From Paragordius varius (Eukaryota; Animalia; Nematomorpha): a stretch of 64,000 nucleotides of DNA. A program made the position numbers and the translations under genes. Shown here piece after piece: positions 13,311 through 56,800 of this stretch. The stretch's first letter is position 1, and every line of letters begins with the position of its first letter. The DNA lies in contig OZ176050.1 in assembly GCA_964247055.1 (NCBI GenBank), positions 13,392,001-13,456,000 on the forward strand, read 5' to 3'. Under the pieces are notes generated by a model. The model did no database searches and had not been told where the DNA came from. It worked only from the letters and a program-made list of their open reading frames with translations.

Positions 13311-13603
13311 AAGTAACTTATAAAAGACATTCCCCAAATACATTTAAAACAAACAGTGATTTCAAAATCAATATTAGCGAGATTTCATCGCTACTTGTGA
13401 ACAAAAGCACTTTTTATTTTTTAACTTTAATATCTTCTTTTGATTTTTTCAGCGCAACTGATTGCAATATCACGGGCATATTCAACGTATGAATTCCGGT
13501 ATTTGATAGAAAATTGTTCAGAAAGTTATTGGATGGTAACCCCAGGTACCTAGGATCTAAAACGGTAGATGGACGGCCTACCATATTTTAATCAAAGACT
13601 GCA

Positions 13604-14734
13604 CCAGGCGTAGTCGTAAGTTATTACCGGTTTAACTAAGAGCAAACGTCAAGAAAAAGTACGCAGACGATTAATTTGATACACACCCCACTTTGTTCAT
13701 CCGACATTAAACGATAAACACACAAAAGTTGAATTCACCAAAAATTCGCGTTATTTTTTTATTTTACCATGTATTCGTGCCTGAATAATAACATTTGCGG
13801 ATCGCATTGCCATCAGAAGAAAAACGCTGTTGAAAGTATGGTGAAGATGCTCTACGATCACCACATGTGAAGTTTCTAAATATTAATTGTGATTTTATAA
13901 GGAAGAGTGTAGGCGCTTTGGCAGATTATACAACTACGAAGTCGCTAAAGTGAAATTATTAAATGATGACCCAATTCAAACTTAAAAAGAATTGGCAGAA
14001 GCTACGTGTATCACAAATCAATAGATGTCTTCGAGCAATGGAAAAGACCAAAAAACTCGGTAAATGGATTTGATTGAACGTCCAATTGAAATTCGCAAAG
14101 TCACTTGTGAAATCTTACTTCACACGAAAATAAATTCTTTTTGCATCGAATTGAGACGGGTGATAAGAAATTATACTGTATGCAAAGCGGAAGAACGATC
14201 GTGGCTTTCTACTTGTTTCGATCCATCAACACCAATGCAGAATCGCTTCCTATTTGGTGTCTGGTAAGATCAGAGCGAATTATAATGAATTTGAAAGTCT
14301 TAACACTATCGCCAATAATAAATTAATTTAAACTATGATTCAATAAAAAACATCCCAAATTGGCCATGTGATAAGGCAAAGTGATTGTAACAATGCTCCG
14401 TCTAACACAGCAAAACTAATGAAAGGCATCTTCGTTTCGATAATTCTTTCGCATCCACTGAACTCTCCTGTCCTGACGACATTAACAAGCTTTAATGGGG
14501 GACATATCCTCGCAGAGCAGCTATCAATAATTTCGAAGACTTTATAAAATGGCTTGCGAAATGGTTATTTGCAACACACAATCAGTTTTTCTGCCACAGC
14601 ATTTATATATTACCTGAGAGATGGGCGAAAAGAAACCAATGACAATTTTTTTAATAAAATATATAATTGATTTTCCCTCAAAAATAAATTTTTATTTTAC
14701 CAAAAAATAGGCAAAAATTTATGACTAGTCCAGG
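13604..14734 (+). mobile_element. Decayed Mos1-like mariner element
   Basis: Left TIR CCAGGCGTAGTCGTAAGTTATTACCGGTTTAACTAAG and a matching right TIR near 14710-14734. Transposase remnants include E-I-L-L, F-L-H-R-I-E-T-G-D-K-K (Mos1 FLHRIVTGDEK) and L-P-E-R-W. Confidence 0.88.
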
Positions 14735-14853
14735 TATATAAACTAGCCCACGCTTTTAAATATATCATTAAGTTCGGGATCTTTATTAAAAATATCCAGA
14801 CTTATACTTTTGTATGTTGGCGCCTTATATCTTCAATTATTACTATGTTTTAG

Positions 14854-16073
14854 CCGCAATCGCCAAATTTACATTGTTGTGATTATTGTCGAAAACCTTT
14901 ACCGCGTTGTGCAATATGTTTGCAACGAATGGTTTTTACTAAACCGCTTAATAAAGAAGCTTTAAAAAATTAAAAACCAATTAATTACTCCAATATACCA
15001 ATAACATCTCATCATAGTACCAATGTTAAAGAAGCAAATTTAACTATCGCTGATAAACCCATTGGTATTGATATAAATTTTGTTTTGAATATTCTTGTGC
15101 TATTTTTGAATAAAAATATATATATAATACCTTTATGAATATAACAAAATAAAAACCTTCTGATTAACTGTTAAATAATGATTATCATAAATACCAAAGA
15201 AATTTGAGAATTTAAGAAGAAAAATTTAGTTTTTTAACAAATTTTATGATCTCATAGATATGCTTTAACAAACATAAATAAGTAATAGCAACAAACAAAC
15301 ATAAATAAGTAATAGCAACAAACATTATCATAGTCACCATGGAGGTCACATAAATCATATGGAGGAATGGTTTAAGTAAGTTTTATAAATTCCAAAAATT
15401 TACGTAAAACTGATATATGACTCCCTTTTCAATAACCCTTTAAAATGATACCCAAAAAATCTTAAATTAATTTCAAATAAACTTCTAGTTAACTTTTATT
15501 AAATAATTAAATTACATATTTGTGGAGTATAGATTTTATGAAAAATAGATTTTTGTGAATGTTTTTGTGCGATTCAATAAACAACCAATTTTTTAGCATT
15601 TTCATTATATTAATATCAGAAATATTATTAAAATGAGTTAGATTAAATATCATCTAAAAATGTGATAATCTGAATTTAGATAATCTGCACTTTAAAAATA
15701 TTCAAAAGTAGAATATACTGTGAAAAAATTCTACGAAATTTAAGCCTAAATGTCAAGTCAAGATGATATGCCTTTTTCGCTGATTTTTTTTTCTTTATTA
15801 TAAATATTTTAGCGTAGATTCAGGCAAAAAGGTATTTGCATTATTATGCCGACCAATGATATTTGGAATATTCTAAAAAAATTACTTAAAATTTTTTTGG
15901 CGCAGTGTTTTATAAAGAAGTGTAGCTGTATTTCCATTTTAGTATACCTTCAATAAATTATATATATATAAATCATTCGCTTTTATTTTTATTTCATTTT
16001 TTTGGTTATTTGTAGGGATCACGTTGAATGTCCTGTCTCGGGCTGCCTTTGTGCCTGTTATTATAATTTTTAA
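14854..16073 (+). pseudogene. MIOS: Orphan duplicate of the last three MIOS exons
   Basis: 14854-14973 reads PQSPNLHCCDYCRKPLPRCAICLQRM...KN-stop, with a premature TAA where the intact gene has GAA. ~15333-15375 reads HHGGHINHMEEWF with the exon's 5' half replaced. 16016-16073 reads DHVECPVSGCLCACYYNF-stop. All three are inverted copies of exons at ~49.7, 49.2 and 47.9 kb. Confidence 0.88.
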
Positions 16074-16723
16074 TCAATTTTAGATAGATAATAAATATTT
16101 ATTCAATGTGAATTATATGACGATGTGACATTCATTATACATATTTATTTTCACAAAAACAAAAAAATACATAAATATGACAAAGTTGTATATAAGATGT
16201 ATATATATTAAAATGTGTACCTACCTAACTAAAAATATATTGCATAAAGTGAGTGTATTTTGATGTTAAAGTTATTTGTGCAAAACTAGAGTAATATTAT
16301 ATTTATATTATAAATTTAATTATGCTTGCTTCTATATGGTTTGTGTAGTATTAATCAAAAATGTGGAATTGTGAAATTCAAATGAGATCCTTTACCATTA
16401 TTTATATATATGTGTATGAGGAAAAAATAAATACCAATATGTATAAGGAAATATCGTAAATTTTTTCAAGAAAAATGCTTAAAATTTTGTGACTCTTTTT
16501 TTGACCTGTGCTATAAAATACTAATTACAGTAAATAATCATAATTTTTTAAAGGAGTTGAACCTATATGAGCAAATATATTGTTTCTTCTTTTAGAAAAA
16601 GCCAAAAAAATTGATTTTGCTCACATACAATATTTAAATTTATGATATGACCATATAAAAACCACAATTGATTTTACCATGTTTTATTTTTTTCCCTAAA
16701 CTCGTAAGGTTTTTAAAAGTTAG

Positions 16724-19700
16724 TTAAGAATCGCCATTTTTGGATGCAGATGCGCGTGAAATCAAGGGCGATTTTCTACCCGACAATGACATTTGGGAGA
16801 GGAGTTCTTGCATGGTTCGTCCACTTTTTTGTTTAGTTTGAAGGGAGACAGAGCCAAATTTCTTGGCAAAGCCGTTTTCTTCCCCATTCAAAGACGTCGT
16901 TTTATTTATATTATTGGCGTTAGATTTTGTCCTATTTTCAAGATTATGTGCACCTTTAGCATTTAATGCATCTTTTTGTTGACCGTTTTTATTAATACTA
17001 AGTAATTTTAGGGGTTTTGTTTTATCGTTCATGTTTTTAGTGGGTGTATATGAAGGAATATTGATGTTAGGTACAGTAGAAGGAACTATATTTGGTTGAG
17101 AATTATCTTGGAAAAAGTTGAAGCATTCCAAACTTTCCACCTTTTCTATGAGCGAAAACTTTTGTTGAATGGCCGTTTTAAGCATGCTATTCAGGATTTT
17201 GTGTTCGGATTCCAGGTATTTGCACTTCTTATCCAATTCTAGCGTACGCATTTGTGCCTCTCTACATTCCTGAAAAAATTAATAATTTATTTGAAATTTT
17301 CCGTAAAAACCCCTTTTTCTTTATTAGATATTGTTTACGCTAAAACTTTTTGCTGTAATTTGAATTATGAAAATTCGTTTATTCCTAATTTTATAAAATT
17401 TAAATAAACAACATTTTTTACACCAAATGCGTATTTTTATAAGGCAACATTTTTAAAATTCACCTTTGTTTCACATGAAATGATATTATTGACTTAATTT
17501 TTAAGTAATGTTGAATAAAATTAAAATAATAAAACAATTTTAGAGTAGGATAGGTATACAATATTTCGATTCATAATAACTTACTTTCCTGCTGGCTGAT
17601 AATTGGGTAGATAATGCAACACAATCATCTTTGTACATGGAAAGCTCTTTCCTGTATTTAGCCAAAGTTTCGGAAACAACCTTCATAATTTATATAATTA
17701 TTATATAAATCTCCTAGAAGTTATATTTTACGTAATTAACTCCTTGATTGCAGTAAAAAATGAAATTATACAAAACAATACGTAAAAAGATAAAACATAT
17801 TAAAAGACCGCTGTAATTATTTATGATTTTTATTAAAAAATATATAAAGTTTAATTGTGAAATTAGTAAATTAGAGATGTAAATTGGTAAAAAAATTAAT
17901 GATATGTTTTACAGTTGTAATTAAATAATTTATATAAAAAAGGTTCAAAAAAAATTGGTCGTAAATTTGTGTCTGGATATTATCAATTATTACTATATAT
18001 TAAATATATATATATATTTCTGATTTTTAACAATTATTACTATATATATATATATTTTTACTTTTATAAAATTTATATTTTATATAATAACCTTTCTCTC
18101 CTCAGTATATTTGACTTGCATTTTGGCAAAACAGGTTTCGGCAGTCGTTTTATAGTTTTGTAGCACTTGGCGATAATTGGCATTTTTGCATCGTTTATTC
18201 ACTATGTCAGCTTTAAGCTTTTGAATTTCCCTATGTTTATATATGTCATAGTATTAGATTAATCAGTATAAAATAAACTAGGGGTGTCCAACGCAAATGG
18301 TTTCGCGGGCCGCATTTTTGAATCTCAAGAATCTGACGGTTAACATTCAAAACATATATGAAAATTAATTAAAAAAAATTAGATTTCAAACACTTTAAAA
18401 TTAATAAACAGAATCATTTATTTGAACAATTTTGCTAATTTGTTGCCAAAATTTGTTTTGAATGTAGTAAATAGCATTTTTTTAATATAAATTATATTTA
18501 CCGGTTGTTTCGTGTTTTTGTCAAAAAATTTTCAAATGTTTTTTACGTGTAAAATCGTTTTATTTCGATTCAACTTGCATCAATGTATAAATAGCCATAC
18601 TATTTTCAATAAAAACAAAAAGGCACATAATTTAATAATCCACCAAATATTAATTTCTCTAAAAACTTCAAACAATATCCATATAAAAAGCAGGGTTAAC
18701 CTTTTAAAAATTGAAAAACAGATAAGACTTAAAAAAGATTGTTCTAATTGTAATCGTCCCAAAATATAAAATATAATTTTACCTTAATAATAGTGCTTCT
18801 CTATCCGTTAAACTGTTTGTTCTTTCACCATTAATTTTGCTATTTCTAATTTTTGATTCCCCGTTTGTTTGGTTATCATTAATGTTTTCGGAAACCTAAA
18901 AATTAAAGTTTATAATAAAATTATAATAAATTATAGCATTTTTTATGCAAAAAAAGGTATATATCATATTAAAGATGCTTTTCGAATATTTAAAATGGTC
19001 GTTTTTAAAATTTGAAAAACCTTTTGGAATTTAAGTTTATAACTATATCATATATATATATACTAATAATTCATCGTTTGTCATATTAAAATCATCGGCA
19101 ATAGTTTCATTAGCATGTTGTATATTGGTTTGAGAAACACTGGTGGCAACGTATGGTAAAAATTCGTGCTTCAATACTTTGGATAAAGATTTTAGTGTTT
19201 TTTCAAAACTGTCAATCCTTTGTTCCATTTTATTGTTGCCTTTAACGAATTTAGTATCGTTATCTCCTTCAGATTCCACTGTATCAAAAACTAAAAGTAT
19301 ATAATAAGAAAATTCATTTATTAACCAATTTCAAAAAAAGGTTTTTCATTAAAAAAATTTATATACCTAAATATGAATTTATATAACATTTTATCTAATT
19401 AACCTATTAAAATTTACCCTTCAAAACATTTTTATTTGACCTTAGTTTGCAAAATTACCCTTAAACATTTTAAATTAACGCTAATATTAATTTTAGGGTA
19501 AATTTGGGGTATAGATGTTATATATTGACATGAGACAAAAAATATAAGAAAAGAGTGCAGTGAATGCATTATATGACAAAAATTTGCAAATATAAAAATA
19601 AAAAACCATTTTCAAGAGTACCATCCATGTTACAATCCATTTCTTTTTGCATTATGGTAAGCTTTTCTTTCAAATTTGTCGCTAATTTTTCAGGAATTTG

Positions 19701-27038: not shown

Positions 27039-30000
27039 TTATATCGACAATAAGAAGAGAGTATTTATTTTTTCATAATTTGTGACAATTCTCGACCTCG
27101 CTGAGCTGAAGCTTGTACGGCAGACATAAGGGTAGCTCTTAAGCCACCCTTTTCCAGTTCATAAATTCCTGCAATAGTCGTTCCACCTGGAGAAGAAACT
27201 GAATCTTTTAAGGCGGCAGGATGTTTCCCAGTTGTTAACATTAATTGACTTGAACCCTATCATATACAATTATATTACAGTATGAATAAGTAAGTATACA
27301 TTGATAGAAAGTTATTAATTGCTTATTGCCAAATAGTAAATATAACAAAGGGCAGTATTAATGTGGCTAATAATAGTAAAAATCGCAAAAAACAACTATA
27401 AGCCAATAATACTGCCCTTTGTTTTCCTTACTTTTTGGCAATAATTAATAATTTTCAAGCAATGTATGTTACTCATACTGTAGTATTTTGAGATTTAAAT
27501 TTGTATACACGCCTATTTAAATTATGATATAGAAACGAATGATATATCTGGAATAAACAGCTCTATTGGTTATACGGGTTTTTTAAATCGTTAATAGGGT
27601 TAAAATTTGAAATGTTTGTGAAGAATTATTGTTTTTTTCATTTATTCTTGCTTATAATTTAAGCCGTTTAAAAATATTTAAAGATACATCCCTAGGACCA
27701 CATTTAAAGATTCATAAAAACAATATTATGGCTCTTTACTGTATATCAAAACAACGTTTTAAATTGAATAAAAAATCCATTTAGTAAAGGGTTTCTAATT
27801 TAATAGTTCTGATTAATATGTAATCATATTTTTCACTATGGAAAAATCTCAAATTTCAAAAGTAATAAAAATATAAATTAACCTTAAGAACATGAGCTGC
27901 ATACTTTAAAGCCATGTCGCGAGGTATGCCCATTTTAACAGCTCCATCAGCCAAAGCTTCAATTATGATAAATGCCTATGAGACAAAAAATATATTAATA
28001 GAAATTAATAATATTAAAATGTTAAAGTAGTTATTATAACTGAATTCTGACCAAAATATAAATAATAAAAAATATGTTATCCAAGGTTTAAACTAATACG
28101 AGTTAATTTATTTAATCACAGAATGAAAATACAGTTTAAAAGAGTTTATAGCTCCTAAAATGGAAATACCAGTTACAGTTCAAATTCACCCTTGAACAAT
28201 TTATATTCACCCATGAACAATTTCTTTAAACAATTCAGATTCACCCTAATAATAAATTATCTGTTTTCGAATATTAATATAACTCATTTATTAATATGAA
28301 ATATATCTTTATGACATAGTTTATTATTTTTTCATTATCATTTTAATTCAATACAAAATTTAATTTTTTAAAAGGATATAAAAATATAAGTAATTTTAAA
28401 TCTTTAAAAAACATATGATTTTAGATGGTTAATTTGCATTGTTCTAGGGTGAATTTGAATTGTTCAAGGGTGAATTTGAATTTTTCAAGGGTGAATTTAA
28501 ATTGTTTAAGGGTAAATTTGAATTGTTTAAGGGTGAATTTGAATTGTTCAAGGGTAAATTTGAATGTTAAAGGGTGAATTTTCTACAATCCATAAAAATA
28601 TTTAATGGCTATAAAAAAAACGGATATATACATATGCCGGACCACTTCCAATCAAGCCACCATAGGCATCCATTAATGGTTCAGGGACTGCGTCGCAAAT
28701 ACCCATTGACCCGAATAGGATTTGTACAATCTTTTCGCATTCTTGCGTTAAAGTTAACTCTATACAAAACATTTTATAATTAGTAAAATTTATGGCAAAA
28801 TATGTTGAATCACACATTGAATTAACAATATAAAAAAATCAATCATTTTATTTAAAGGGTGTAAATTTCTTGTTATATGTCAAAAAATTTGTCCATTCAG
28901 TTTTATACTTTTGTATCGTATGTTTTAAATCGATTTTCGTTTATTCTATGAAAACATTGTCATAAAATATAGCCATGACTAAATGACATGTTTTAACAAC
29001 ACATTTTCATTAAATTCAAAATTGAAAAAAATATGATAATTGATTTTGTAATATGTGTATGTATATTTTAAATTAATTTCCTTTTGATGTAAGATATTAT
29101 ACGTTATTTACTGGATTGCCAAAATTTTAATTAGTACTTAAGTTTTAAGCTAATAAACTTAAAAGAAAAGTCTTAAACATTGTACGACTTTTTTAAAATA
29201 ATTTTGCAATATATTAATCATTTAAAACTGACCTAAATTGGAAAAATGCTGGAAAAACGTTTCCAGATATATACTAAAATTTTAGCTCAAATCCAATTTT
29301 TTGTGTTTAATCAATTCTATAAAGTGGTATAATTCTAATAAATACACATACACCTCAGTTGAGAATTATATAAAATTAAAGGTCAAAAAAGGGTAATTTT
29401 GCAATGCTTATAACTTATTAATTATAAATATTCACAAATTTGATTTTGTCCAGCAAAATAAATAAAAAATCAATTTCAAAAATACTATAAAAAAAGTTAG
29501 CATTTTTGTTCCAGATTGATATTGTTTAAATTTGTAATATTTAACAGACAGAAAAATTTTTGATACGACCTATAATTTGAATTTCATTATCATTTAATTT
29601 TGGCGTTTTGTTTGACTGTTACACGCTTATAGACAAATTTTGTCGAATTTGTCAATTTTTAAATAAACGTTTTGGAAATAAAATCTCTTAAACAACTTTT
29701 TTTTATTCTTATAATAATAAATCATAATGGTAGATATTGATTGCATGTTAATAACCAAATAAAAATTCCAGTGTTACAAAATAAATATCCAATATGCGAA
29801 AATTTATTGATGACAGACCTTCGGGCATCTTTGAGTCAAAAACTTTGATGGAATAAACGCTAACCCCATTTCCCACTAAAAGAGGCGTATTTGGCATGAT
29901 TCTTGCTATACATCTATTCGTACAATGTTCTTTATGCGGTAAACACTGTTTATAACTTTAACATAAATCATACATCGTTCAATGAATCCAAACTAATGCC

Positions 30001-30837: not shown

Positions 30838-31179
30838 GGCTGAGCGTAGTGGTGTGCGCTTGTAATCCAACGACTTTGTGGAGGCCGTTACACAGAGTGG
30901 TGGATGGTTCGAGACCAGGGTCCATACTCGGTTTGTGCTCCCTTTTCACGCAATCATCATATGATCGAATGCCCACATTAAGCCTGGCATCGACATGGGC
31001 TTACACAATCATACACGGAAGTGAGTGGGCCCAGGTCGCGTAAAGAGAGGCGAACCGGCCCAGGCTGGAAACAGAGCAGGCAAAAGTCTCCTTGCCATTC
31101 ACGGCTATGCAATGGGAGAGCATTCGTGAGTGAACCATTCCCGAGTATCCTGGTCACGTTCGGGCCAAACCCACTTTTT
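30838..31179 (+). ncRNA. 7SL: Signal recognition particle RNA (7SL), ~340 nt
   Basis: Alu domain GGCTGAGCGTAGTGGTGTGCGCTTGTAATCCAACGACT with the UGUA motif. Helix 8 GGCCCAGGCTGGAAACAGAGCAGG has the GAAA tetraloop and SRP54-binding motif. Helix 5 pairs GACCAGGGT/ATCCTGGTC and GGTTCGA/TCGGGCC. A T5 terminator ends the gene. Confidence 0.95.
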
Positions 31180-42765: not shown

Positions 42766-44400
42766 TAGTGGTGTACTGAGGGGGGGCAAGGGGGTGCATT
42801 ATGCCCCGGGCGCCGTTATTTAGGGGCGCCTAAATGATTTTTTTACTTAAATTTAAATTATGGAAAACTAATTAACTTTCAATTATTTATTTCAACAGTT
42901 GATATAATAATCCTTAAATAATATAAAAATTATATAAGTGAGATCAAGAGCAATCATTATGTAAAAGACAACTTTCATGATATTCCCTTCAACATGTGCA
43001 AATTTATTCCTTCGCTTTTTCTTTATCACGCACATATTGTTAATTCTTTTATTGCCTTTAATATAATTTTTTTAACTTCTCTCTCTGTTCAAACCTTAAC
43101 TCTTTTTTCTTACAATTTATAATTGCATTTTTATTTTAATCATATTCAATTTCAAAACCCAATTTTATTTATTTAAATCCCCAATATCATTCCATATCTA
43201 ACAAGGTAGGTTATTTTTATTATTATTATTACCTTATATTATTTAGTTATTATCATTTTCATCAGATATAATACCTAAACTCAGCGGTTAAGCAAATAGG
43301 AAATGAAAAATCCAGAAGCAGAGTAAAACAAATAAAATGCGAATGTGTATGAAAACTTATTTAACGAAAATATCTGATCGTAACATTAAAAAAAGAACGG
43401 TACCCCTTAATATTAATAACTTAATACACCTGAAACCCTAGTTATTGATTGATATAAATAGAGATAAGATAATTACAAATATAGCATTAGTAATTCCAAG
43501 GGCAATTCCTATAGAGTTTAATGATGCTCCTATTTAAACTTTACTAATAATAATGTTCCCGTAATATCTAAACAACTTCGCACAGAAATGATCATTCGTG
43601 GATATCAAGGATATCAAAATAAATGTAATCTCTTTGAAACAAAAAATCATCGTTCAATGCCCTAATCTTGGTTTTTTCTACGAGTCATTTAATAAGAAGG
43701 ATTTGAAGTTGAGAGGTCTTGGCTTTTATATTCACCAAAAAACAGATCTGTGTGTTTTTGTTGCCTACTTTTTAATCGATCTAATTCTTTACCATCCTCT
43801 TTTATTACTACGCTTGGTTTCAATAAATGGAGGAAAAAAGATAAATTTATCCATCATGAAAATAGCCTCAATCATCGGAAAGCATTTACTACTTGGAAAG
43901 AGGCAGAAGAAGATTGATAAATAAAAATGGAATTGTTTCTGAAGCTCATATACAATCGGAAAAGGATGGTTGTTGGCCTGCTTAAAAATTTTAATCACCC
44001 AAAATCTCCCTTTAGGGCATGTTGAAAGTTTAATGTATCTTGATTCAGCACCAAGTCCTGGAAACTTATTTTTAATTTACTTAACCTTATAGCTCAGTTT
44101 TGACCTAATAATGGGAGACCACATGAGAAACATTGAATCTCCTAACAATTTATCCGATGTTTAATTCAAAATCCAAAACGAGTTTATACATCTTTAGCTT
44201 CAAGAGTTAAAGCTAAATTGATCAATGACATAAAAAAATAAATATTATGGACTTATATTTGATTCAACGCCATATATAGCCCACCGAGAACAAATTTTTC
44301 AAGTTGTCAGGTATCCCACTGGATTTTATCAGACGAAAATGCTGTACGCAAAGACATTTGTGGCGAGATTTCTGGTCCTATAGGTTTGTTTAATATTTTT
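42766..44400 (+). mobile_element. hAT transposon relic (ZMYM1/TTF zinc finger-type transposase), 3' truncated
   Basis: GC-rich left end TAGTGGTGTACTGAGGGGGGGCAAGGGG...GCCCCGGGCGCC. Frameshifted remnants read HENSLNHRKAFTTWKE, QNLPL-GH, SPGN-F, IAQF and YYGLIFDSTPYIAHREQIFQVVRY (hAT first catalytic-Asp region). Confidence 0.8.
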
Positions 44401-44629
44401 ACAATGATTAAACTGTAAAATAAATTCTCCACCTTTTTAGCACACTAATTTTATCTTTTGATTTTTTTGTTGAATTGCCGAAAACATGGCAAATTAAAAA
44501 AAGATAATATGGTTAGAAAATATACAGTGCTTTTGTTCACATGTTGTAAATGAAACTTCTATAATATTAATTTCGAAATCAGCTGTTTGTTTTAAATGCA
44601 TTGGGGGAATGTATTTTAGAAATTACTAA

Positions 44630-45190
44630 ACTTAAAAATTATATCTTTTTCGGTCTAATATCTAAGTACAATGTTTGATAATTATATATTATTAAAACCA
44701 TTAATTTTAGAGTTTAACAGGTTTAATGCGGTAGTAGAAAACCTCAAAATGTAATATCAAAAAAGAAAAAGTAATGAGATGTAAAAAATTATTCTTGTTA
44801 AAAATGATATTAATCAATATATTTATGTAAAAATGTATCAAGTAATATCTGAATTTTAAAAATAGCCATCCGATCCAATAAATCAAGAGCTAGAATTTGG
44901 GTCTCATATTCTATAGTAAATTATTTAGCTTTTTTGAACAATGCATCATAGAATGACATCATTAAATTTGGTATAATAATTATCTCGGTAACTAATATTA
45001 AAAATAGCTCGGTGGCTGAAACTCTTAAAAGGTATGAAGTGATGAGATAAAAGATATATTATAAACTTTTTAACTTATTATACAGTAATTATTCAAAAAA
45101 ACAAAGACGGTCTAACTAAATACGATTGACCCATGTGAATTATTGTTAAAATCAATTCAGTGCTATGAATATTGACTTACGATCAAAAAA
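44630..45190. repeat. Segment A' (inverted copy of 12770-13310)
   Basis: Collinear reverse-complement similarity to segment A with scattered indels. Confidence 0.85.
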
Positions 45191-45886
45191 TGTTAGTATA
45201 ATGATAATTGAACAGAAACTAATTGTTTGACAAACACAAAGAACCGGAACCAAAAACCCGGTTTTATATTAGGGTTTGGTTTTAACCGGTTTAAAAGCAT
45301 TCAAGCTCATAAGCACTCATTCATAAATTTTATATATGTTGATTCAATAAAACCAATTATGTGTTTTAAGCGTTGAAAAAATTTGATAAAATTCTATTTT
45401 ATGACCATTAAATATAAGTAATTTTAACCATTATTTTATATTATATATGTGTAAAAGTTTTTAAATAGTTATTCTTATTAGCTGTTGCTCACTCTATCTA
45501 CTCATTACCAGTCAATTCAATTCTAGCTCCTAAATCTTTATAGATAGTTCTCAAATAGACATATTCCAAAGGTTTCCAACACGCGGCTTACCGAAATATT
45601 TTTGAAGCCCTGGAGAAATTTAAAAAATACCTAATATAAAATCTAATTATTAAAAAATGTTATTTACAACATTTAAAACAAATTTTGGCAATAAATTATC
45701 AAAATTGTTCAAATAAATGGTAGTTATTTTTAAATCCAATAAATTTTTTTCAATTAATGCTCATATATGTCTATGTCCCGTCAGATTCTTGAGATTCAAA
45801 AATGCGGCCTTTTAAGCCATTTGCGTTGGACACCCCTAGTTTTTTGTATACTGATTAATCTAATAAAATGACATATATAAACATAG

Positions 45887-47407
45887 GGAAATTCAAAAGC
45901 TTAAAGCTGCCATAGTGAATAAACGATGCAAAAATGCCAATTATCGCCAAGTGCTACAAAACTATAAAACGACTGCCGAAACATGTTTTGCTAAAATGCA
46001 AGTTAAATATACGGAGGAAAGAAAGGTTGATTATATAAAATATAATTTTTATAAAAGTAAAAATATTTAAACTTATATCAAAATAAATAAATATATATGT
46101 ATATATATATATATATATATAGTAATAATTGATAATATCCAGACACAAATTTACGACCAATTTTTTTTGAACCTTTTTTATATAAATTATTTAATTACAA
46201 CTGTAAAACATATAATTAATTTTTTTACCAATTTATATCATTAGACTTTATTTAAAACATTGAGTTATATTAAAAAAAATCAGTTTAAGTAGTTACAGCA
46301 CTCTTATGAAAAAAATATTTCTTTATCTTTTTACGTATTGTTATGTATAATTTCATTTTTACTGCAATCAAGGAGAATTATGTAAAATATAACTTCTATG
46401 AGATTTATATAATAATTAATATATTATAAAGGTTGTCTCCGAAACTTTGGCTAAATACAGGAAAGAGCTTTCAATGTACAAAGATGATTGTATTGCATTG
46501 TCCACCCAATTATCAGCCAGCAGAAAAGTAAGTCATAATGAATCGAAATATTGATATATCTATCCTACTCTGTAATTTTTTTCTTTATTTCATTTTTATT
46601 CAACATTACTCAAAAATTAAGTCAATAATATCTTTACATTTTGAAACAAAGCTGTAAAATAAGCATTATATTTTAATGTTGCCATGAAAATAATTTGGTT
46701 TAAAAAATGTTGTTTTATAATGAAATGGGGCTTCATTTATATTTTGTAAAATTAGCAATAATCGCATAATTCCAATTAAAGCAAAAAGTTTCACGTAAAC
46801 AATATCCATTAAGTAAAAAGGGGTATAGTGCGAAAAGTTTCATATAAATTATAATTTTCAGGAATTTAGAGAGGCACAAATGCGTACGCTAGAATTGGAT
46901 AAAAAGTGCAAATACCTGGAATCCGAACACAAAATCCTGAATAGAATGCTTAAAACGGCCATTCAACAAAAGTTTTCGCTCATAGAAAAGGTGGAAAGTT
47001 TGGAATGCTTCAACTTTTTCCAAGATAATTCTCAACCAAATATAGTTCCTTACACTGTACCTAATATCAATATTCCTTCACATAAACCCGCTAAAAACAT
47101 GAACGATAAAACAAAACCCCTAAAATTACTTAGTATTAATAAAAACGCTCAACAAAAAGTGGCATTAAATATTAAAGGTGCACATAATCTTGAAAATTCC
47201 ACAAAATCAAACGCCAATGATATAAATAAAACGTCGTCTTTAAATGGGGAAGAAAACGGCTTTGTCAAGAAATTTGGATCCGTTTCCCTTCAAACTAAAC
47301 AAAAAAGTGGACGAACCATGCAAGAACTCCTCTCCCAAATGTCATTAACGGGTAGAAAATCGCCCTTGATTTCACGCGCATCTGCATCCAGAAATGGCGA
47401 TTCATAA
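45887..47407 (+). CDS. BICD: Orphan inverted duplicate of the last three BicD exons; ORF and splice sites intact (possible minigene or young pseudogene)
   Basis: Exons 45887-46025, 46432-46527 and 46862-47407 match 18092-18230, 17585-17680 and 16724-17269 with no indels or stops. The first in-frame ATG at 45996 gives 223 aa. No upstream BicD exons were found on this strand. Confidence 0.7.
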
Positions 47408-47891
47408 CTATAAAAACCTTACGAGTTTACGAATAAAAATAAAACATGGTAAAATCAAGTGTCATTTTATTAATATGGTAATTGTGGTTTTTATATGGTC
47501 ATAAATTTACATATTGTATGTGAGCAAAGTCGATTTTTTTGGCTTTTTCTAAAGTGTACATTGTTTAATTAAAGATAAAACAATATATAGTTGCTCATAT
47601 AGATTAAACAACACCTTTAAAAAATTATATTCTTTATTGTAATTAGTATTTTATAGCACAGGGTAAAAATGAGTCACAAAAGTTCTAATTTTTTTGAAAA
47701 AATTTACGGTATTTCTATATACATATTGGTATTTATTTTTTTCTCATATTCATATATAACTTATATATAACTTTGTCATATTTATATCTTTTTTGTTTTT
47801 GTGAAAATAAATAATGTCACACCATCATAAAATTCTCATTGAATATATATATATATATATATATTTACTATCTATCTGGAATTGTTTTTGA

Positions 47892-50800
47892 TTAAAAATT
47901 ATAATAACAGGCACAAAGGCAACCCGAGACAGGACATTCAACGTGATCTCTAAATAAATAACCAAAAAAACCAATAAAAATAAAAGCAAATGATTTATAT
48001 GTAAATAATGTATTAAGGAAGGAGGTAGATTAAAATAGAAAAACAGCGTAACTTGTTTGTGTGAAAAAACTGCACATAAAAAATTTTAATTACTAAATTC
48101 ATTGGTCGGTATAATATTGCAAAAACATTTTTGCCTGAATCTACGCTAAAATTTCATTATATACCATTTACAGTTCATATTCACCCTTAAACAATTCAAA
48201 TTCACCCTTGAACAATTCAAATTCACCCTTGAACAATTCAAATTCACCTTTGAACAATTCAAATTCACCCTAAAAATAAATTATGTGTTTTCGAACTAAT
48301 ATAACTCATTATTAATATGAAATATAAATTTATGGTGTAGTTAATTATTTTTTCAGTATTAATTTAATTTAAAACAAAATTTTTATTTTTTAAAAAATAT
48401 ATAAAATATAGGTATTTTTTGATCTTAAAAAACATATATTTTATTTGAGGGTGAATTTAAATTGTTCGAGGGTGAATTTGAATTGTTCAAAGGTGAATTT
48501 GAATTGTTCAAGGGTGAATTTGAATTGTTCAAGGGTGAATTTGAATTGTTAATGGTATATAAAAAAAATTGACGATAAAGATATATCTTGACGTTAAAAA
48601 ACATTAAGGAATTATATTTTTAATAGATTGCATTATTGAAATTATAGTGGGATTATCCAAATTCAGATTATAAAATTATAGGATTTTAAACTGGTTATAG
48701 CACGCAAAAAAATTAATTTCATAAACAGAGAAGGTACAGTAAAAATTGAAATATGGACAAAACGTAAAAATATAAAGACAAATATTTTTCTCTAAAAGAC
48801 AACCATACTTTTTAAATCGTAATTTTCTTAAATGTAATGATTGTTTTAAATTCCAAAGAATAATTATAGATGTTAATTGGTAAAACAATTAATATATATT
48901 TTAGGCATGTTAATAAATGTATAAGTAAGATTAAGGTTTAAAAAACTATGGTTGTATTTTAGAAAAAGATATTTGTCTTTATATTTTTACGTTTTGTCCG
49001 TATAATTTTAATTTTTACTGTGCACAAAAAGAGGTTTGATTGTATTCTATTATATAATATGCATTAATATGTGTTTGATTCTACGGATTATTTTGAAAAT
49101 TTTAGGTATATATAAAGGTTATTCGAAATTAATTTAAAATTTTTCTGAGGGTTACTTAAAAGGGATTGCAATATCAAGTTTTAAGTAAATTTTTGAAATT
49201 TATAAAACTTACTCAAACCATTCCTCCAGATGATTTATGTGACCTCCATGGTGACAACTCAGACACCAGCAAAACCATTTGTTCAAATTATCCAAATCTA
49301 TTACATTTTTTTAAAATATTATACATTGACATTCAAGAAAAATGTTAGTAATGTTTGTTAAAGCATATCTATGAAATCATAAAATTTGTTTAAAAAAACG
49401 AAATTTTGCATCTTAAATACTAATTTGGCATATATTAATTATAATTTTGTCATCTTATAATAGTCATTATTTATCAGTTAATCAGAAAATTTTTAATTTG
49501 TTATATACATAAAATTATATATAACCTTTATATAAATACTTTTATTCAGGGAAATTTTAAAACGCAAATATCAATACCAATGAGTTTATCAGCGATAGTT
49601 AAATTTGCTTTGACATTGCTACTATGATGAGATGTTATAGGTATATTAGTGTAATTAGTTGGTTTTTCATTTTTTAAAGCTGCTTTATTAAGCGGTTTAG
49701 TAAAAACCATTCGTTGCAAACATATTGCACAACGCGGTAAAGGCTTTCGACAATAATCACAACAATATAAATTTGGCGATTGCAGCTAATATACAAGGAA
49801 AATTGAAGATAAGGCACTACATATAAAGTTTAAGTCTAGGTATTTTATAAAGATCTCAACCCTAATAATATATTTCTGAAGCATGAATTGAAATGCTAGT
49901 ATTAGGTGTACTCAAAAGTTTTTATTGTTTTTTCGGCAAAATCATGTAAGTTTGAATGATAGCTTATTCTTTTATTTAAAATTTTATATCGATTTCTACA
50001 TATTTCGCCCATCTCTCAAGTAAGATTTATGCCGTGGCAAATTGATTGTCTTTTGCAGACCGTTTGCAACCTATTTCGATTCGACATTATCAATAGGTTG
50101 CTCTGCAAGGATGTGTGCCATTAATACAAAATCGTATTAGTCAAATGGCAACATTAGGTGAGTTCAGTGGATGTGAAAGAATTTTCTATCGAAACGATTT
50201 CAAGATACCTTTAGTTTTACTGTGTTAGACGAAACATTGTTATGTAGCAAAATCACTTGGACATGCCTTCTGGCCAATATCAATCGTTTTTCGATTAAAT
50301 GGCGACGTTTAAAGGTTTTCTCGGGTTTCAAAATTCATTATACAATAACTGATTCGCACCAGGTATAAAGCACGGTCTTCCTGCCGAAGCTATTTAACAT
50401 TGGCGTTGATGGACCAGGGCAAGGTGAAAGCCACGATTTTTCATTGGATTTACATAATAAAGCTATTTCTCATCACCCGTCTTCATTCGATGCAAAAATG
50501 ATTTCTTTTTGAGATTCAAAGAGTGTGGAACCCATTTACCAAGTTTATTTGTCTTCCTCTTGCTCGTGAACATCTATTAATTGTTTTTTGTAATACATGT
50601 AGCTTGTGCCAATTGTTATTAGTTTATATTGGGCATCCAATAACTCTTGCACTTTAGCGACTTCGCAGTGTATTACAGAGCGCCCACACTCTTTCACCTA
50701 AAATTACAAATTTTAATATTTCGAAACTTAACATGTGGTGATAGATAGAGCATGTTCACCATATATTTCTGCCAGCAAGAGATACCTTTCAACAACCTTT

Positions 50801-53800
50801 TTCCTCTGATGATGTCCCAAAAATGTTATTATTTAGCACAAATTTGACTTGATCATTGAATAAAAAATAACGCGAGTTTTTGGTGATTTCAACTTGCTTA
50901 TGTTTTTCGCTTAATGTTTGAACAAAGTGGGGTATGTATCAAATTAATCGTCTGCGTATCGATTGCTAACGCTTTGATTTAGTTAAACGGGTAAAAACTT
51001 CTGAATTCTCCTATTACAGTCTTTGATTAAAAATATGGTAGTTTACTACCTATCATCTAGATAAAAAATTAAAACCTCTTTTATAGCGCCCGGTTTTGTA
51101 TTGATAGTGGGAACAGGTTTTTTGCCACCACCCCGATTCCAGCTTGTGGCGAAAAGGGATTGATTTAGATCCTCATCTTTGGAGTCATTAGAAATTTTTG
51201 AAATTTCTTTTTTATTTTTTGACTCAGCACTATAAACTAAAGGTATGTCAGAGATTTTGTCAGTTTTATCCACATTGTTATCAATAGGGCTGTTTGACTG
51301 CTCAAATATCGGTTTATTAGTGGCGTTAGTAAATATATTTGTAATTTCAAGATCATTTTTTGTTTCAGAAGCTAATCCAAATTTTTGTGGTTGCTCCTCT
51401 TTATCTAACACAAGAAAAAAATAAATATTAGTTATAAAAATTTTGTTAATAAATAATTTATTTTAAGAGGGTATCAAGATTATTCCATTGACGGTTTCTT
51501 TTAAGCCCAGGATTGACCCTTTACTTTAATATTTCATAAAAGTTCCAACTTCTTACAAAATACCGTTATTACATTAAAAGATAAATGCACAAAAAAATTC
51601 ATTGCGCCTTGCATTTTTATCAGTACGATGCTATTTATTCATTACCTATTGCTAAATGGTGTTTTGATAAAGTGTTGTTTTTAAAAATGGTTCCAATTTT
51701 ATTAGTAAAAACGCTAATTTATGGCCTTTTATATACCATCTTTGGTATGATTATCGATTTCTACAGGAAGGGAATCTTGGTTTGTATCGGTAATAATGTT
51801 AATCGTGGTGGCAATTTCTTTTTGTTTTAGATTGCTGGCAGATTTATCATTGGGTGAAATTTTGTCTGAACATTCATCCAAAATCTTTTTTCTTAAGGGA
51901 CGTCCGCAAAACGGACAGGAAACAAAGGGCTACACACAAAATTTGAGTTAAAAACTTAGTTATCTTATTTAAAAAAGTGGAATTAGATAAATGCATAATA
52001 TAATTGTAATGTGGAAAACAATAAATTTAAGATTCTTACTGATGGATATGGTGCTTTAAAATTAAAGGGAAACTGATTATTGATGTAGGAATCCAGCTTG
52101 ATTCTAAAAGTATTTATGTAAAATCAAAATTAAGTTTATAGAGATACATTTATTAACTTTACATGTTTAGTGTTTAATTTAAATACAGTTGCACATTAAT
52201 GTTGATACTCACATTATTTGTCAATTGGCAATACACTAGCGTCAGGATAAAAACAACAATTGTTGAATTAAAATTTTTTCCTATCTTACAACATTAATTT
52301 TATTTAATTATGTACTAATTGTGTTTCATAACGCTACTGTATTACCAATTGGCCAACAATATTGTGAATTGAGCAACATTAAAATGAATACTACCATTTA
52401 TATATTAAATTCACCCTTGAACATTTTAAATTGCTATAAACCATTTTAAATTCACCATTAAACATTTCAGATTCACCTTAAAGGTTTTAACCTCACACCT
52501 GATTTAAAATTAACCCTTAAACATTTCAAATTTATTCTCAAACATTCAAATTTTACCTTTGACCATTTCCATTTCATGCTTTGGAACATTTTTCACTTTC
52601 AAAAATTTTATATTCCCCAAAAAACATTCCAAATTGATCCTAAACGTTTAATAAATTATCAACATTTGAAATTCACCATCGAACATTTTGAATTTACTCT
52701 CTAATTTTGAAAATTCGCACGCTATATTTCAATTTCCTGAGGATTTAAACATCCTAAAATATTTTAAATTAACTGTTAAACATTTAATTACCCTTAAAAA
52801 TATCGAATTGACCCTTAATTTCAAATTTGCACTCAAATATTTTACTCTCAAACATTTGCAATCCACCCTATGCGATACCCTCAACATTCACCCTTGTTAT
52901 ACCCTAAATATTTCAAAATCCTGGAAATTTTTATTTCACCCCTGAAAATCTATATTAACCTCGCGTTTTAAATTCAGCTTAAAAATTAATTTTGTAGGGT
53001 TGGACTAAATTTTAACTGATATTTGATATTGAGTATTTGTTTGGTATTATTTATATTTTTTCTGTTTTAATACTCTATTTTGTTAATTTTCACAAAAATC
53101 AAAAACATAATTCTCATTTTTTATCAAAATGATGTAATAAAACAGAAAAAACAAATATTTAATATCCTGAATAAATTAATTTAGCGCCAAAACACATAAT
53201 TTGTTTTTAGTGGTCATTTGAAGTTTTATAGGGTAAATTTAAGGCGTAAATCGTAAGTTTATTTTTCTTAAACTTATTACAAATCAAAGAGCTGTATTTT
53301 TTAATTATTGGGTATCTTAATATATTATACAAATAGGTCACAATAAAAAGCTATAGGCGCATACCTACAACCGCAAAACATGAAAAAAAATAACACACAC
53401 TCATTTTTGAGCACTGATCAAGGTACTAATAAAATTGGCAAAACGTTATAAACATATTGATAATGAAAAGCAAATTAAAAAAAGCAACAAATAAACCAAT
53501 GATTAATTTCTGGCAGAATTTTAATTCAAAAATTCTCAAACCTTACCTTGTTTCAAATTCCTGACATTGATTGAGCCAACTTCGATAACTATATAAAATA
53601 AATAAAATTAATCTGAGATATTATTAAAAATATGATGGTAATATTGATTCATAATAAGCAGTTTTAAGATTATTTTATAATAAACCAATGTATCAGATGT
53701 ATAAAACGTGGATGTGTGCGTATATTGGAGCCTACTTCGGATATAATATCTTTATTTGGTCCACTTACTTTGTTGTTAAATTTGGATCCAGTATATTGAT

Positions 53801-56800
53801 CATGTTTGGAATCTCCTATTTATCAAAAATGCTTAACATTAAAAAAATGTTATAAATTTATTTCAAAAGAAATAGATATTTTTTGTTTTGTTATTATACC
53901 GTTATTTCCCAGAAATGTTTTTGAGTAGTTTATATTTTTCCCATCATCAATTCCGTTTTCGTTTGTCCTATTTTCTTGTTTTTGTCCTGCACACTTATTC
54001 TTTAGCAGGTAATTAGGAAAAATGACGGTTTCAATATTTAACCCAATAATCATTGCAGATAACAATGTATTAATATTTTCAGCTTCGTTGGAATATTTGC
54101 TAAGTAATTGAATAATGGCATTGCTATAAAGTTCAATATCTACCACTGATGAATGGGATAATTGATAATCTGTATTAATATAAAAGATTTTGATTAAACC
54201 TAATAAATGAATAGGATGTATCCATTAGATTGATATGCAAAAAGGGTATTGCAAACATTATATGCAGTACTAAAGTAAAAAAACAACCATTTTCAGATAT
54301 AAAATACAGAATAATTATATAAACCTTAAATGTAAAAAAATATTCCCGTTAAAAAAAGATATATGTATATATAATGAAAATATTATTATAATTATAGAAT
54401 CATTTCAACAAAATTGTAAACGTACATAAAATAACAAGATTAAAAAAAGTAATTACTAATAAAACATATTTATAAAGATAAAAAAATGTTTAATAAATAT
54501 TTTACCCAACATGATTCGAATGAGAGCTATACCGGGTTTTAGGGCACCCAGCGATATAGATTTACATAAATATTGGGTATAAATATCCCAAACGGTTTTA
54601 TCATTTCCCTTTGGGTAAATTGATGCCAAAATTAGCATAATACTAACTTCATCAATAAAATGTATATTTTGATTCTGGCTTTGTAATAAAGCTATCTATA
54701 AATATATTAAAATGAATTTAAAATTCATGTTTACTATTAAGTTATTTATAAATTATTCAAAAAAAACTCAAATCAGAGATAATATAAAGATACAAACATA
54801 AAAATAACGCCATATTTATGTTATGTTTGTCTAATTTTAAACTTTATCATAAAACTCACGGTAATGTTTTAAGTTTTGATAAAAATATTCTAAACTATTG
54901 GTTACCAAATCATATATCAAGTTAGGCGTGCCAGAGGTGTTTGATTCTGATAATTCCAAATATTTCGCCCAAAATTCAACCATAAAAGCAAACAAAGAAA
55001 TGCTAGATATAACATTTAGGCATTTACTTATATGCTAATATCATTGATGATGTTTTATCTTTGTAATCTGATTCCGATAAATTTAATTTCCAATGTTGGC
55101 CAGTTTTATTTAAATCATTAATAAATTGTTTCATAACGTATTTTTGAGAAGCTTTAAGATTTTGTAAGGTGTGCACTCTCGAATTACACATTAAAAGGAC
55201 ATTTTGCAATGTAATGGGGAAATGAGGGAAATTAAGTAGGGCCCCAAATAATTTTGTAATCAATGTTTCATTCTTTTTCTGGCCGAAAATTTGATCAAAA
55301 TATGTTTGTGTGCACATTCTATTGCTGTTTTGTTGCAAATCTTTATTAGAATTTTTTTCCCTTAAATTATTGCATAAATCCCGAAAGAGTGTCAAGGAAA
55401 ATGACATAAATATGGTTGAAAGAATTGAGATTTCATTACTATCCTCACAAAGTTGTTGTTCTTTGTTTGATTCAAATTCGCAAACCAAAAGATCGGATCT
55501 ATTTTTATGGTTATATTAGTAAAATTCTAAAAACTGATAAAAGCGTCAATTTTTAATATAAATATATAATATATATACCATTTACAATTCGAATTCACCC
55601 TTGAACAATTCAAATTCACCCTAAATAAAATATGTATTTTCGAACTAATATAACTCATTATTAATATGAAATATATATTTATGGCATAGTTTATTATTTT
55701 TTCAGTATTATTTTAATTCAAAACAAAATTTTTATTTTATAAAAATATATAAAATATAAGTAATTAAAAAAAATAAATTTTATTTGAGGGTGATTTGAAT
55801 TGTTTAAGGGTAAATTTGTATGGTTTAAGGGTGAATTTGTATTAATTAAAGGTGAATTTGAATTGTTTGAGGGTGAATTTAAATTGTTCAAGGGTGAATT
55901 TGAATTGTTCAAGGGTAAATTTAAATTATAAATGGTATATTAAAATGATAAAATTTACCCTATAATCAAGTTTTCTACAAACAGGTCATTATTGCTTTCA
56001 TTCCATAAATTCCATCCAAGCAATTTTAAGACGTTGCTTAAACAATCATTTGACCTATTATAAGATATACACTAAAAATTGAAATTATATGGACAAAACG
56101 TTATAAAGACATTTTTTTTCTAAAAGACAACCATACTTTTTCATACCTTAATTTATTCTAAAAATAAGTTAATATATGTAATTGATTATGTTTTCAATAA
56201 ACATCTCTGATTTATGCTTTGCATTATAAAACATCAGTCAAGATTAAAAAAGTATGGTTGTCTTTTAAAAAAATATAATTGTCTTTAAATTTTTATTTAT
56301 CCGTATTTTTTACTGTGGATACATTTTGGGAAAATATAAGTTTAGTCTTCTTTAAAATTAAAACTGTCTTCTTATAATTATTACTAATTTTTAAAACTAT
56401 ATCCTTTATTATAAACTACAAACATATTAGTGTGAAAATTTCTGTTCTGAAAAAAACCTTTCGTCTTCAATATTGTTTTTCGTTTCCATATCCTTTGTTC
56501 TAGTTTGATTAATTGTATCGCTAAATATCCATATATCTTTAAACGATGCAAGCATCTAAATTTTAAAAATATATAGGTTTCAAAAGTAGATAAGAACTAA
56601 TTTTAAGTGATGATAGATATGCAAAAACTAATTTTTGTTTAAATAAGATAATTGGACAACATAAAGTACGCGGAAAATGTTTTATAATAAACGGTGCTAA
56701 TTATAACAATTTGTATACCTCTTGACAAAGTTCCTCGCTAAATAATAGATTTGGTTTCAATGTTAATCTTTCAACGTTTTGTAATTTTAGGACATGTTCA

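Follow-up and report, generated by a model that had tools for sequence, protein, structure and literature searches.

The window analysed here is a 64,000-nt stretch of the genome of the nematomorph Paragordius varius (contig OZ176050.1, positions 13,392,001 to 13,456,000). It carries a Kelch-type ORF (ATG at 12672, − strand), a working BicD gene on the − strand, a gene termed Z, and on the + strand a second copy of the last three BicD exons, referred to below as the orphan exons.

Inversion layout and breakpoint duplications

blastn self-comparison of the window revealed two inverted pairs, 13578-18499/51041-45639 and 12785-13446/45195-44491, in the reciprocal order Kelch-Y-X'...Y'-X-geneZ. 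Y (12785-13446, − strand) is the original Kelch-upstream stretch and adjoins the Kelch ORF. Y' (44491-45195, + strand; blastn and MAFFT) is its inverted copy. X_left (13578-18499) contains the working last three exons of BicD and an orphan copy of the last exon of gene Z. Its inverted partner X_right (45639-51041), the full duplicated block at the right breakpoint, contains the orphan BicD exons, intergenic DNA, the functional last exon of gene Z and part of the last gene Z intron. Y' and X_right meet at a new junction, J2, formed by the spacer 45196-45638, which gave no self-match and has no copy elsewhere in the window; the other new junction, J1, is at 13446-13578. The 5' exons of BicD are present on the left only, ending with the phase-2 donor exon 18783-18895, and the upstream ORFs of gene Z on the right only. 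The duplicated X block is genic (BicD and gene Z exons), not repetitive; a mariner-like remnant lies in the gene Z intron.

This layout is the footprint of an old inversion of ~26 kb that arose by staggered breaks at both ends, and it bears out the original prediction that a single rearrangement created the new adjacency. Judged by sequence divergence, both inverted pairs are of the same age, because identity over aligned non-coding bases is similar in the two (84.9% for Y/Y', with 13 gap events by MAFFT, vs 83-86% for X). The ancestral order would have been Kelch - Y - M - X - geneZ(5' part), with the 3' ends of BicD and gene Z lying tail to tail within X. Filling in and rejoining of both staggered stretches would have produced Kelch - Y - X_left(inverted) - M(inverted, 18500-44490) - Y' - X_right - geneZ(5' part). 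BicD now uses the exons in X_left and gene Z the exon in X_right, so that X_left retains one surplus exon of gene Z, and X_right three of BicD. By its sequence, the three-exon copy is thus a spare BicD 3' end left by the inversion.

The same pattern, with both stretches duplicated, has been described for six Drosophila inversions (Ranz et al. 2007, PMC1885836). There as here, genic DNA that had been single-copy at both breakpoints is found duplicated and inverted at the two ends (A-Y-X'...Y'-X-D), gene fragments remain, and divergence between copies consists of substitutions and small indels (identity ~88% in Drosophila and 83-86% in P. varius). The block is larger in P. varius, 5.4 kb as against at most ~1.9 kb of aligned sequence in the Drosophila cases. 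In a synteny comparison, the Gordionus BicD locus with 10 kb of flanks contained none of the neighbouring genes of the window.

Structure and CC3 identity of the orphan BicD exons

The orphan exons A (45887-46025), B (46432-46527) and C (46862-47407) have the limits, AG/GT sites and frames originally proposed. All splice sites are intact, and there are no indels and no stops in 259 codons. Exon A consists of one base and 46 codons, exon B of 32 codons, and exon C of 181 codons and a TAA. As claimed, an in-frame ATG at 45996 in exon A opens 223 codons (10+32+181). A duplicated remnant of a BicD intron (45639-45886, + strand) precedes exon A; it aligns to 18499-18231 and supplies the AG acceptor at 45885-45886. 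The parent exons are 18230-18092, 17680-17585 and 17269-16724 (16724-18230, − strand). Directly upstream of the parent of exon A lies 18783-18895 (− strand), which ends in ...LLL followed by AG|GT, a phase-2 donor. The orphan has no copy of this exon, because the exon lies outside the duplicated block. The frame of exon A begins at 45888; the single base before it finishes a split codon, and the donor of 18783-18895 completes an Arg codon with this first G. Phase and junction are identical in Gordionus BicD. A frame clash considered between parent exon 19046-19279 and exon A proved only apparent, since the small exon 18783-18895 with its AG|GT donor matches the Gordionus junction.

Identity between orphan and parent is 95.7%, 93.8% and 94.7% for exons A, B and C. 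The 781 exon bases align without a gap, vs 29 gap events in ~1400 non-coding columns, and 41 exon sites differ (e.g. 45910, C in the orphan and A in the parent). Introns and flanks show 83-91% identity over aligned bases and 73-81% with gaps counted, so the earlier description of introns at roughly 80% with many indels was fair. One intron stretch of 125 nt (46115-46239) is 98% identical between the copies. A conserved GC-rich element at 45778-45845, found in the two copies only, was considered as part of a MITE with inverted ends and rejected; the local alignment score was no better than that of shuffles.

Pfam PF09730 (718 positions) matched exon A at positions 592-636 (E = 2e-4) and exon C at positions 685-717 (E = 4e-3); these per-exon matches fall under the curated whole-protein cut-off because the pieces are short. 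tblastn with Gordionus BicD gave 71% identity for exon A and 67% for exon B (Gordionus residues 548-626), and phmmer matched the solved CC3 structures 4YTD, 4BL6 and 6OFP (E = 0.007-0.02). Residues 10-49 of exon C align to Drosophila BicD 703-743, and the rest of the exon is a low-complexity tail. Residue 37 of exon C (K in AIQQKF, the same in parent and orphan) aligns to Drosophila K730, which we take to be a conserved cargo-binding lysine. By these sequence comparisons, the three orphan exons match the C-terminal (CC3) region of BicD, and they span the full CC3 region as delimited by the solved structures; the module is intact, as had been suggested.

CC3 binds cargo and autoinhibits BicD (PMC6056235, PMC6056234). 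Like CC3 of BicD/BICD2 (PDB 4BL6, 4YTD, 6OFP), exons A-C align to Drosophila BicD ~617 to 743 and Gordionus BicD 548-813, with the lysine at K730 present. Unlike known BicD and BICD2, the orphan lacks CC1/CC2 in cis, its long C-terminal tail is lineage-specific, and its protein is a predicted one. In a tblastn search of the window, Gordionus BicD residues 6-388 matched only the − strand exons 24819-20162, with no + strand match upstream of 45887.

The nearest BicD to that of the window is from Gordionus. Protein collections contained no product identical or similar to the orphan, and orphan exon C had no match in its length class. Neither the orphan nor the parent exon C ORF was on record in an exact look-up. 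An exhaustive protein search with orphan exon C returned Gordionus BicD only, at 33% identity; no other relatives came from protein searches with the Gordionus CC3 region or the Kelch ORF. The atlas look-up of the Kelch ORF gave only 'arthropod-like BTB/BACK'; that of gene Z gave nothing usable.

Signature of selection on the orphan exons and decay of the gene Z exon

Codon comparison with the parent reproduced the counts made earlier by eye: 5 synonymous and 1 non-synonymous differences in each of exons A and B, and 9 and 15 in exon C. Over the whole copy, dS was 0.14, dN 0.033 and omega 0.23. The CC3 part had 11 synonymous and 4 non-synonymous differences (omega 0.08). The tail is weakly constrained at best, because its omega is 0.42.

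We simulated a neutral orphan beside a fully constrained parent, with the substitution spectrum taken from the non-coding alignment (4000 runs). Neutrality predicted 21 amino-acid differences in CC3, 43 in total and 4.3 stops; 4, 17 and 0 were observed, and none of the 4000 runs gave counts as low. Synonymous differences were as expected (10.3 in CC3 and 21.0 in total expected, 11 and 19 observed). The purifying selection originally proposed thus has a strong signature under this simple model, which presumes that the copies were identical at the time of the inversion. At the differing site in exon A, the orphan has kept Ala, as in Gordionus, and the derived residue is that of the parent; with Gordionus as a single distant outgroup, three of the four CC3 differences are left unpolarised. 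The 36 exon A codons before ATG 45996 show 2 synonymous differences and no orphan-derived amino-acid change, where ~6 would be expected under neutrality, and these codons also look constrained.

Gene conversion, one of the alternatives originally listed, is rejected as the reason why the exons are conserved. It would have removed synonymous differences along with non-synonymous ones, and synonymous divergence equals non-coding divergence (19 differences vs 21 expected from non-coding DNA).

The gene Z exon orphaned by the same event provides an internal control for decay. The functional copy (49550-49782, − strand) encodes a Cys-rich, zinc-ribbon or RING-like C-terminus with a weak PF17034 match (E = 0.032). 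The orphan copy (14857-15090, + strand) has a TAA where the right copy has GAA; of its differences over 57 codons, 3 are synonymous and 6, the stop included, are non-synonymous, and indels follow. The inversion-breakpoint duplicates described in Drosophila are mostly non-functional (PMC1885836). Unlike those mostly degraded leftovers, the BicD leftover here has a clean 259-codon frame and low dN/dS. With far too few amino-acid changes and no stops, the orphan would have been under protein-level selection through most of its history, unless it was orphaned recently.

Alternative explanations and possible use of the orphan exons

Whether this spare BicD 3' end has been kept as coding sequence by selection on the CC3 coiled coil is, in our judgement, an evenly balanced question. 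Such purifying selection suggests that the copy is probably still translated or used. Somewhat more tentatively, we propose that the headless three-exon copy has long been retained, over ~0.07 substitutions/site on its branch, in the role of a working CC3 module, which would be either a free CC3 protein tuning dynein-cargo coupling or an opposite-strand, trans-spliced BicD C-terminus. The likeliest route would be entry of the terminal exon set through the preserved exon A acceptor from a putative upstream exon acting in cis or in trans. Less likely would be a CC3-only protein of 223 residues that begins at ATG 45996. As isolated C-terminal BicD fragments do, a CC3 that is free or alternative would either compete for the cargo partners of BicD or bind its dynein-activating N-terminus. 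The orphan is thus a candidate gene of interest that is still to be demonstrated.

The chief alternative, which we consider possible though doubtful, is a non-functional relic that only seems constrained. Most of the divergence would then have accumulated in a working BicD allele, and orphaning would be recent. This could have come about if the inversion joined already diverged haplotypes via breaks on non-sister chromatids, or if a segregating un-inverted arrangement keeps refreshing X_right by exchange. The simulation stops rejecting neutrality if the orphan was unconstrained for no more than ~15% of the pairwise divergence. Sample S3, which bears the same species label, contains 5-7% of the sampled 31-mers of the stretch. 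Its contigs, among those listed, look intermediate or mosaic between the copies, and gaps aside they differ from the window at ~3-9% of aligned bases; one has a 19-nt stretch near 47530 found only in the orphan, followed by parent-like letters. The low word share and the 3-9% difference indicate that deeply diverged haplotypes exist, and these could have supplied pre-diverged copies. The mostly dead state of known breakpoint duplicates (PMC1885836) also fits a relic. So does a scan of the + strand over 38.5-45.9 kb, in which no upstream exon was found to combine an ATG with a good phase-2 donor. Among the runs searched for the locus, none on record as RNA contains the stretch, and the runs examined at the locus are DNA-like, without intron-removing joints.

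Several observations argue against a relic. Standard staggered-break models involve one chromatid or sister chromatids, so that the copies are identical at birth (PMC1885836). At 15%, the divergence of the non-coding DNA of Y/Y' and X exceeds the 3-9% by which S3 differs from the window. The gene Z orphan exon already carries a stop and indels, and the combination of a tight CC3 and a loose tail mirrors working BicD.

Within the functional reading, the original prediction was of promoter capture, with Y' driving the CC3-only protein from ATG 45996. We regard this specific form as unlikely. Y' does face the exons, as claimed at ~700 bp, and ends 692 bp before exon A. The ORF from 45996 begins at about Drosophila residue 652 and covers the whole solved CC3 segment, the part that binds cargo and autoinhibits BicD (PMC6056235, PMC6056234). 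However, the copied stretch stops 85-113 nt short of the Kelch ATG. Between the end of Y' and ATG 45996 there are 15 ATG triplets, three of them out of frame within exon A, and an unspliced transcript starting in Y' would bear all 15 upstream. The 36 codons without an orphan-derived change also count against a start at 45996, and fit translation entering via the preserved acceptor better.

Still less likely is the other form of the functional reading, in which a + strand orphan transcript is trans-spliced to the donor of 18783-18895 and yields a BicD of full length in which CC3 and tail are variant. At 45886/45887, acceptor and phase do not differ from those of the parent and fit that phase-2 donor, and all of exon A is constrained, including the codons before the first ATG. 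On the other side, a literature search on Nematomorpha and 'spliced leader' found no documentation, and the two CC3 versions differ at 4 residues only, leaving little evident benefit. Drosophila mod(mdg4), whose alternative 3' exons we take to be encoded on the opposite strand and trans-spliced, offers a presumed parallel. There, as we understand it, and here, the acceptor of the 3' exons is intact, and these exons are found tens of kb from the 5' exons and on the other strand. Unlike mod(mdg4), the present locus has a single alternative module, which derives from a breakpoint duplication, and any chimeric transcript of it is hypothetical.

An assembly or haplotype artefact, in which the right copy would reflect an alternative haplotype or chimeric joining and not a second locus, is very improbable: the arms are near-symmetric about the window centre (coordinate sums near 64100) and the best-matching runs X1 and X2 are probably source data of the assembly, but the copies are 15% diverged in non-coding DNA, ordered differently (Y-X vs Y'-X) and set in different unique flanks, runs from two other studies contain contigs that match Y', the spacer and the 3' flank exactly, a 160-nt contig in the independent run X3 is identical to 45456-45615 in the spacer, and X3 depth is equal for orphan and parent letters at 47065.

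Staggered-break breakpoints routinely leave partial gene copies, which are usually dismissed as debris. Here one fragment has a clean frame and a strong synonymous excess; the fragment left alongside it by that event contains indels and, when set against the functional copy, a stop. If the orphan BicD exons are not expressed, the pattern speaks instead for old haplotypes joined by the inversion, or for exchange with a standard arrangement, and would bear on the evolution of inversion polymorphism in a poorly studied lineage. If they are expressed, they would represent a dated and mechanistically explained birth of a gene that encodes no more of a dynein adaptor than its cargo-binding, autoinhibitory end. 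Such a gene would be a natural counterpart of the dominant-negative fragments used in the laboratory, and may be a case of opposite-strand exon use.

Structural origin of the orphan BicD exons

Self-comparison of the window revealed two inverted pairs: the X pair (13578-18499 versus 51041-45639; X_left and X_right) and the Y pair (12785-13446 versus 45195-44491; Y and Y'). X contains the last three exons of BicD and, on the opposite strand, the terminal exon of another gene, here called gene Z, which has a Cys-rich, zinc-ribbon-like C-terminus and a weak match to PF17034. The remaining BicD exons were found only to the right of 18499, and the remaining ORFs of gene Z only to the right of 51041, in both cases on the − strand. 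This placement gives the order Kelch-Y-X_left-[18500-44490]-Y'-spacer-X_right-geneZ. When two pairs of staggered breaks produce an inversion, fill-in duplicates each staggered stretch, and one copy comes to lie inverted at the opposite end; six Drosophila inversions with both stretches duplicated have been reported (Ranz et al. 2007, PMC1885836), and the arrangement derived for such inversions is exactly the order in the window. Y and Y' were 84.9% identical and non-coding X 83-86%; this equal divergence indicates one shared event. The reciprocal inverted pairs, the layout and the equal divergence bear out the original prediction of a single rearrangement behind the new adjacency. The new adjacency, which puts Kelch-upstream DNA ahead of the BicD tail, corresponds to the inversion's non-homologous junction J2, between Y' and X_right. 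On this sequence comparison, we regard a staggered-break inversion as the settled structural origin, with high confidence.

The window is AT-rich (24-36% GC) and has eukaryotic introns of GT-AG type. Its left part carries, on the − strand, a BTB/BACK/Kelch-type ORF (ATG at 12672), the complete BicD gene (24825 to 16724; the parent) and a pyrroline-5-carboxylate reductase gene. A full-length metazoan SRP RNA gene (30839-31179, + strand; Rfam RF00017, 144.5 bits) lies within the inverted segment. A high-copy repeat (43000-44300) abuts Y'; its summed contig depth was ~20 to 170× that of adjoining single-copy DNA in all four runs examined, and one short ORF within it weakly matches a zinc finger (PF25431, E = 0.04). 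A 21-bp repeat (unit AGGGTGAATTTGAATTGTTCA) forms arrays at 28385-28643, 48149-48624 and 55746-55983; those at 48170-48550 form a near-perfect palindrome inserted in X_right only. By-eye reading of ORF translations identified mariner-type transposase-like remnants at 49900-50760, 6838-6947 and 9024-9832, one of which sits in the last intron of gene Z, within the duplicated block.

Protein-level constraint on the orphan exons

The orphan, a headless + strand copy, comprises exons A (45887-46025; one base plus 46 codons), B (46432-46527) and C (46862-47407). As predicted, these matched the last three exons of the parent (18230-18092, 17680-17585 and 17269-16724) base for base with no gaps, at 94-96% identity. 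The predicted drift of introns was also found: introns and flanks showed 83-91% identity at aligned bases and 29 gap events across ~1400 columns. No indel was present in 781 exon bases, whereas the non-coding rate would predict ~8 for the orphan branch; this rate is probably inflated by low-complexity introns. Two intronic stretches were both conserved far above their surroundings: 46115-46239 (125 nt, 98% identical between copies) and a GC-rich 68-nt element at 45778-45845, ~40 nt upstream of exon A (92%). Neither had a further copy in the window, and no function was found for them.

Synonymous/non-synonymous codon counts by eye were reproduced exactly (exon A 5/1, exon B 5/1, exon C 9/15). 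Nei-Gojobori counts, taken exon by exon and then summed, gave a pairwise dS of 0.14, dN of 0.033 and omega of 0.23. Omega was 0.08 in the 126 codons of CC3, the cargo-binding, autoinhibitory coiled coil (11 synonymous, 4 non-synonymous), and 0.42 in the 133 codons of the tail; a dead copy paired with a constrained parent is expected to give 0.5 or more. Within 47051-47200, 4 of the 13 amino-acid-changing tail codons had two or three base changes (TCT/TAC, GAT/GTG, GCT/ATT, AGG/TCC), more clustered than single hits would produce.

We simulated a neutral orphan and a constrained parent in 4000 runs, using the spectrum of the non-coding alignment (13.7% mismatches, AT-biased). Simulated versus observed amino-acid differences were 21 versus 4 in CC3 and 43 versus 17 in total; 4.3 stop codons were expected and none was observed. 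No run reached counts as low as those observed. Gene conversion, suggested originally as an alternative source of the exon similarity, is ruled out because synonymous differences were at the expected non-coding level (CC3 10.3 expected, 11 observed; total 21.0 expected, 19 observed). An internal control from the same event is the orphan last exon of gene Z (14857-15090, + strand, in X_left; working copy 49550-49782, − strand, in X_right), which over 57 codons differed from the working copy by 3 synonymous and 6 non-synonymous changes. One of these differences is TAA against GAA in the working copy, either of which may be ancestral; in-frame and other indels follow. The nematomorph Gordionus sp. 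was the sole usable outgroup (BicD locus GC 27%), and its BicD was the sole convincing library protein match for exon C in protein searches with single exons. With it, the amino-acid difference in exon A was polarised: the orphan retains the ancestral Ala, and the parent has a derived Asp; the remaining three differences in CC3 were not polarisable. Given the standard model of how the inversion arose, the protein-level constraint on the orphan is real.

Sequencing runs and the age of the copies

An assembly artefact or a half-depth alternate haplotype is disfavoured, because runs of two other studies yielded contigs that match Y' without a difference at 44515-44665, 44648-44875 and 44963-45184, and likewise the spacer at 45456-45615 and the 3' flank at 47404-47554, and because orphan and parent letters at 47065 were equal in depth in X3, a run of another study. 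These contigs stop short of the junctions. Among the runs on record, none classed as RNA contained this stretch. All four runs examined were DNA-like, with intron and intergenic contig depths near exon depths and no intron-removing joints.

The proposed purifying selection stands under the standard model, but the simulation ceased to reject neutrality once the unconstrained phase of the orphan was limited to ~15% of the pairwise divergence. This case would apply if the X copies had already diverged at the inversion, through breaks on homologues with old haplotypes, or if the un-inverted arrangement still segregated and exchanged with X_right. A hint of deep haplotypes came from X4 and X6, runs of a further sample that shares the species label and the study, which had 5-7% of the sampled 31-mers of the locus; orphan and parent exons have 6.3% of 31-mers in common, about the same level. 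X4/X6 contigs on 43000-47950 were neither copy but a mosaic of orphan-only and parent-like features, at about half the parent's distance from the orphan (46462-46883: 33 mismatches and 27 gap columns versus 58 and 39). This sample may represent a strongly diverged haplotype, a cryptic lineage or another arrangement.

Translation and possible function of the orphan

A six-frame scan revealed a small parent exon (18783-18895, − strand) of 38 codons ending ...DREALLL, then AG|GT, with the junction and phase of Gordionus BicD. It is easily overlooked, and without it the parent exon ending at 19064 appears out of phase with exon A. This exon pairs naturally with the acceptor of exon A; because it lies outside X, the orphan has no copy.

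As predicted, Y' (44491-45195) duplicates, in inverted orientation, the 0.7 kb that precedes the Kelch ORF and is aimed at exon A from 692 bp away, and ATG 45996 opens 223 codons. Y' ends 85-113 nt short of the Kelch ATG. Fifteen ATG triplets separate ATG 45996 from the end of Y'; three of these, within exon A, are out of frame. A search of the + strand from 38.5 to 45.9 kb for an exon combining an ATG with a good phase-2 donor gave none. The 36 codons of exon A before ATG 45996 had two synonymous changes and no orphan-derived amino-acid change, versus ~six expected if neutral; because of this, translation entering via the preserved exon A acceptor is favoured over a start at 45996. The originally proposed captured Kelch promoter with a start at 45996 would be a possible route among several, but others fit better.

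On their own, C-terminal fragments of BicD have dominant-negative effects. The ORF from 45996 would span all of the CC3 segment for which structures are solved: alignment to Drosophila BicD places exon A at 617-660 and residues 10-49 of exon C at 703-743, with the Lys aligned to Drosophila K730 present. CC3 engages cargo adaptors and inhibits BicD by folding back (PMC6056235, PMC6056234). That the orphan has a current function is about an even bet.
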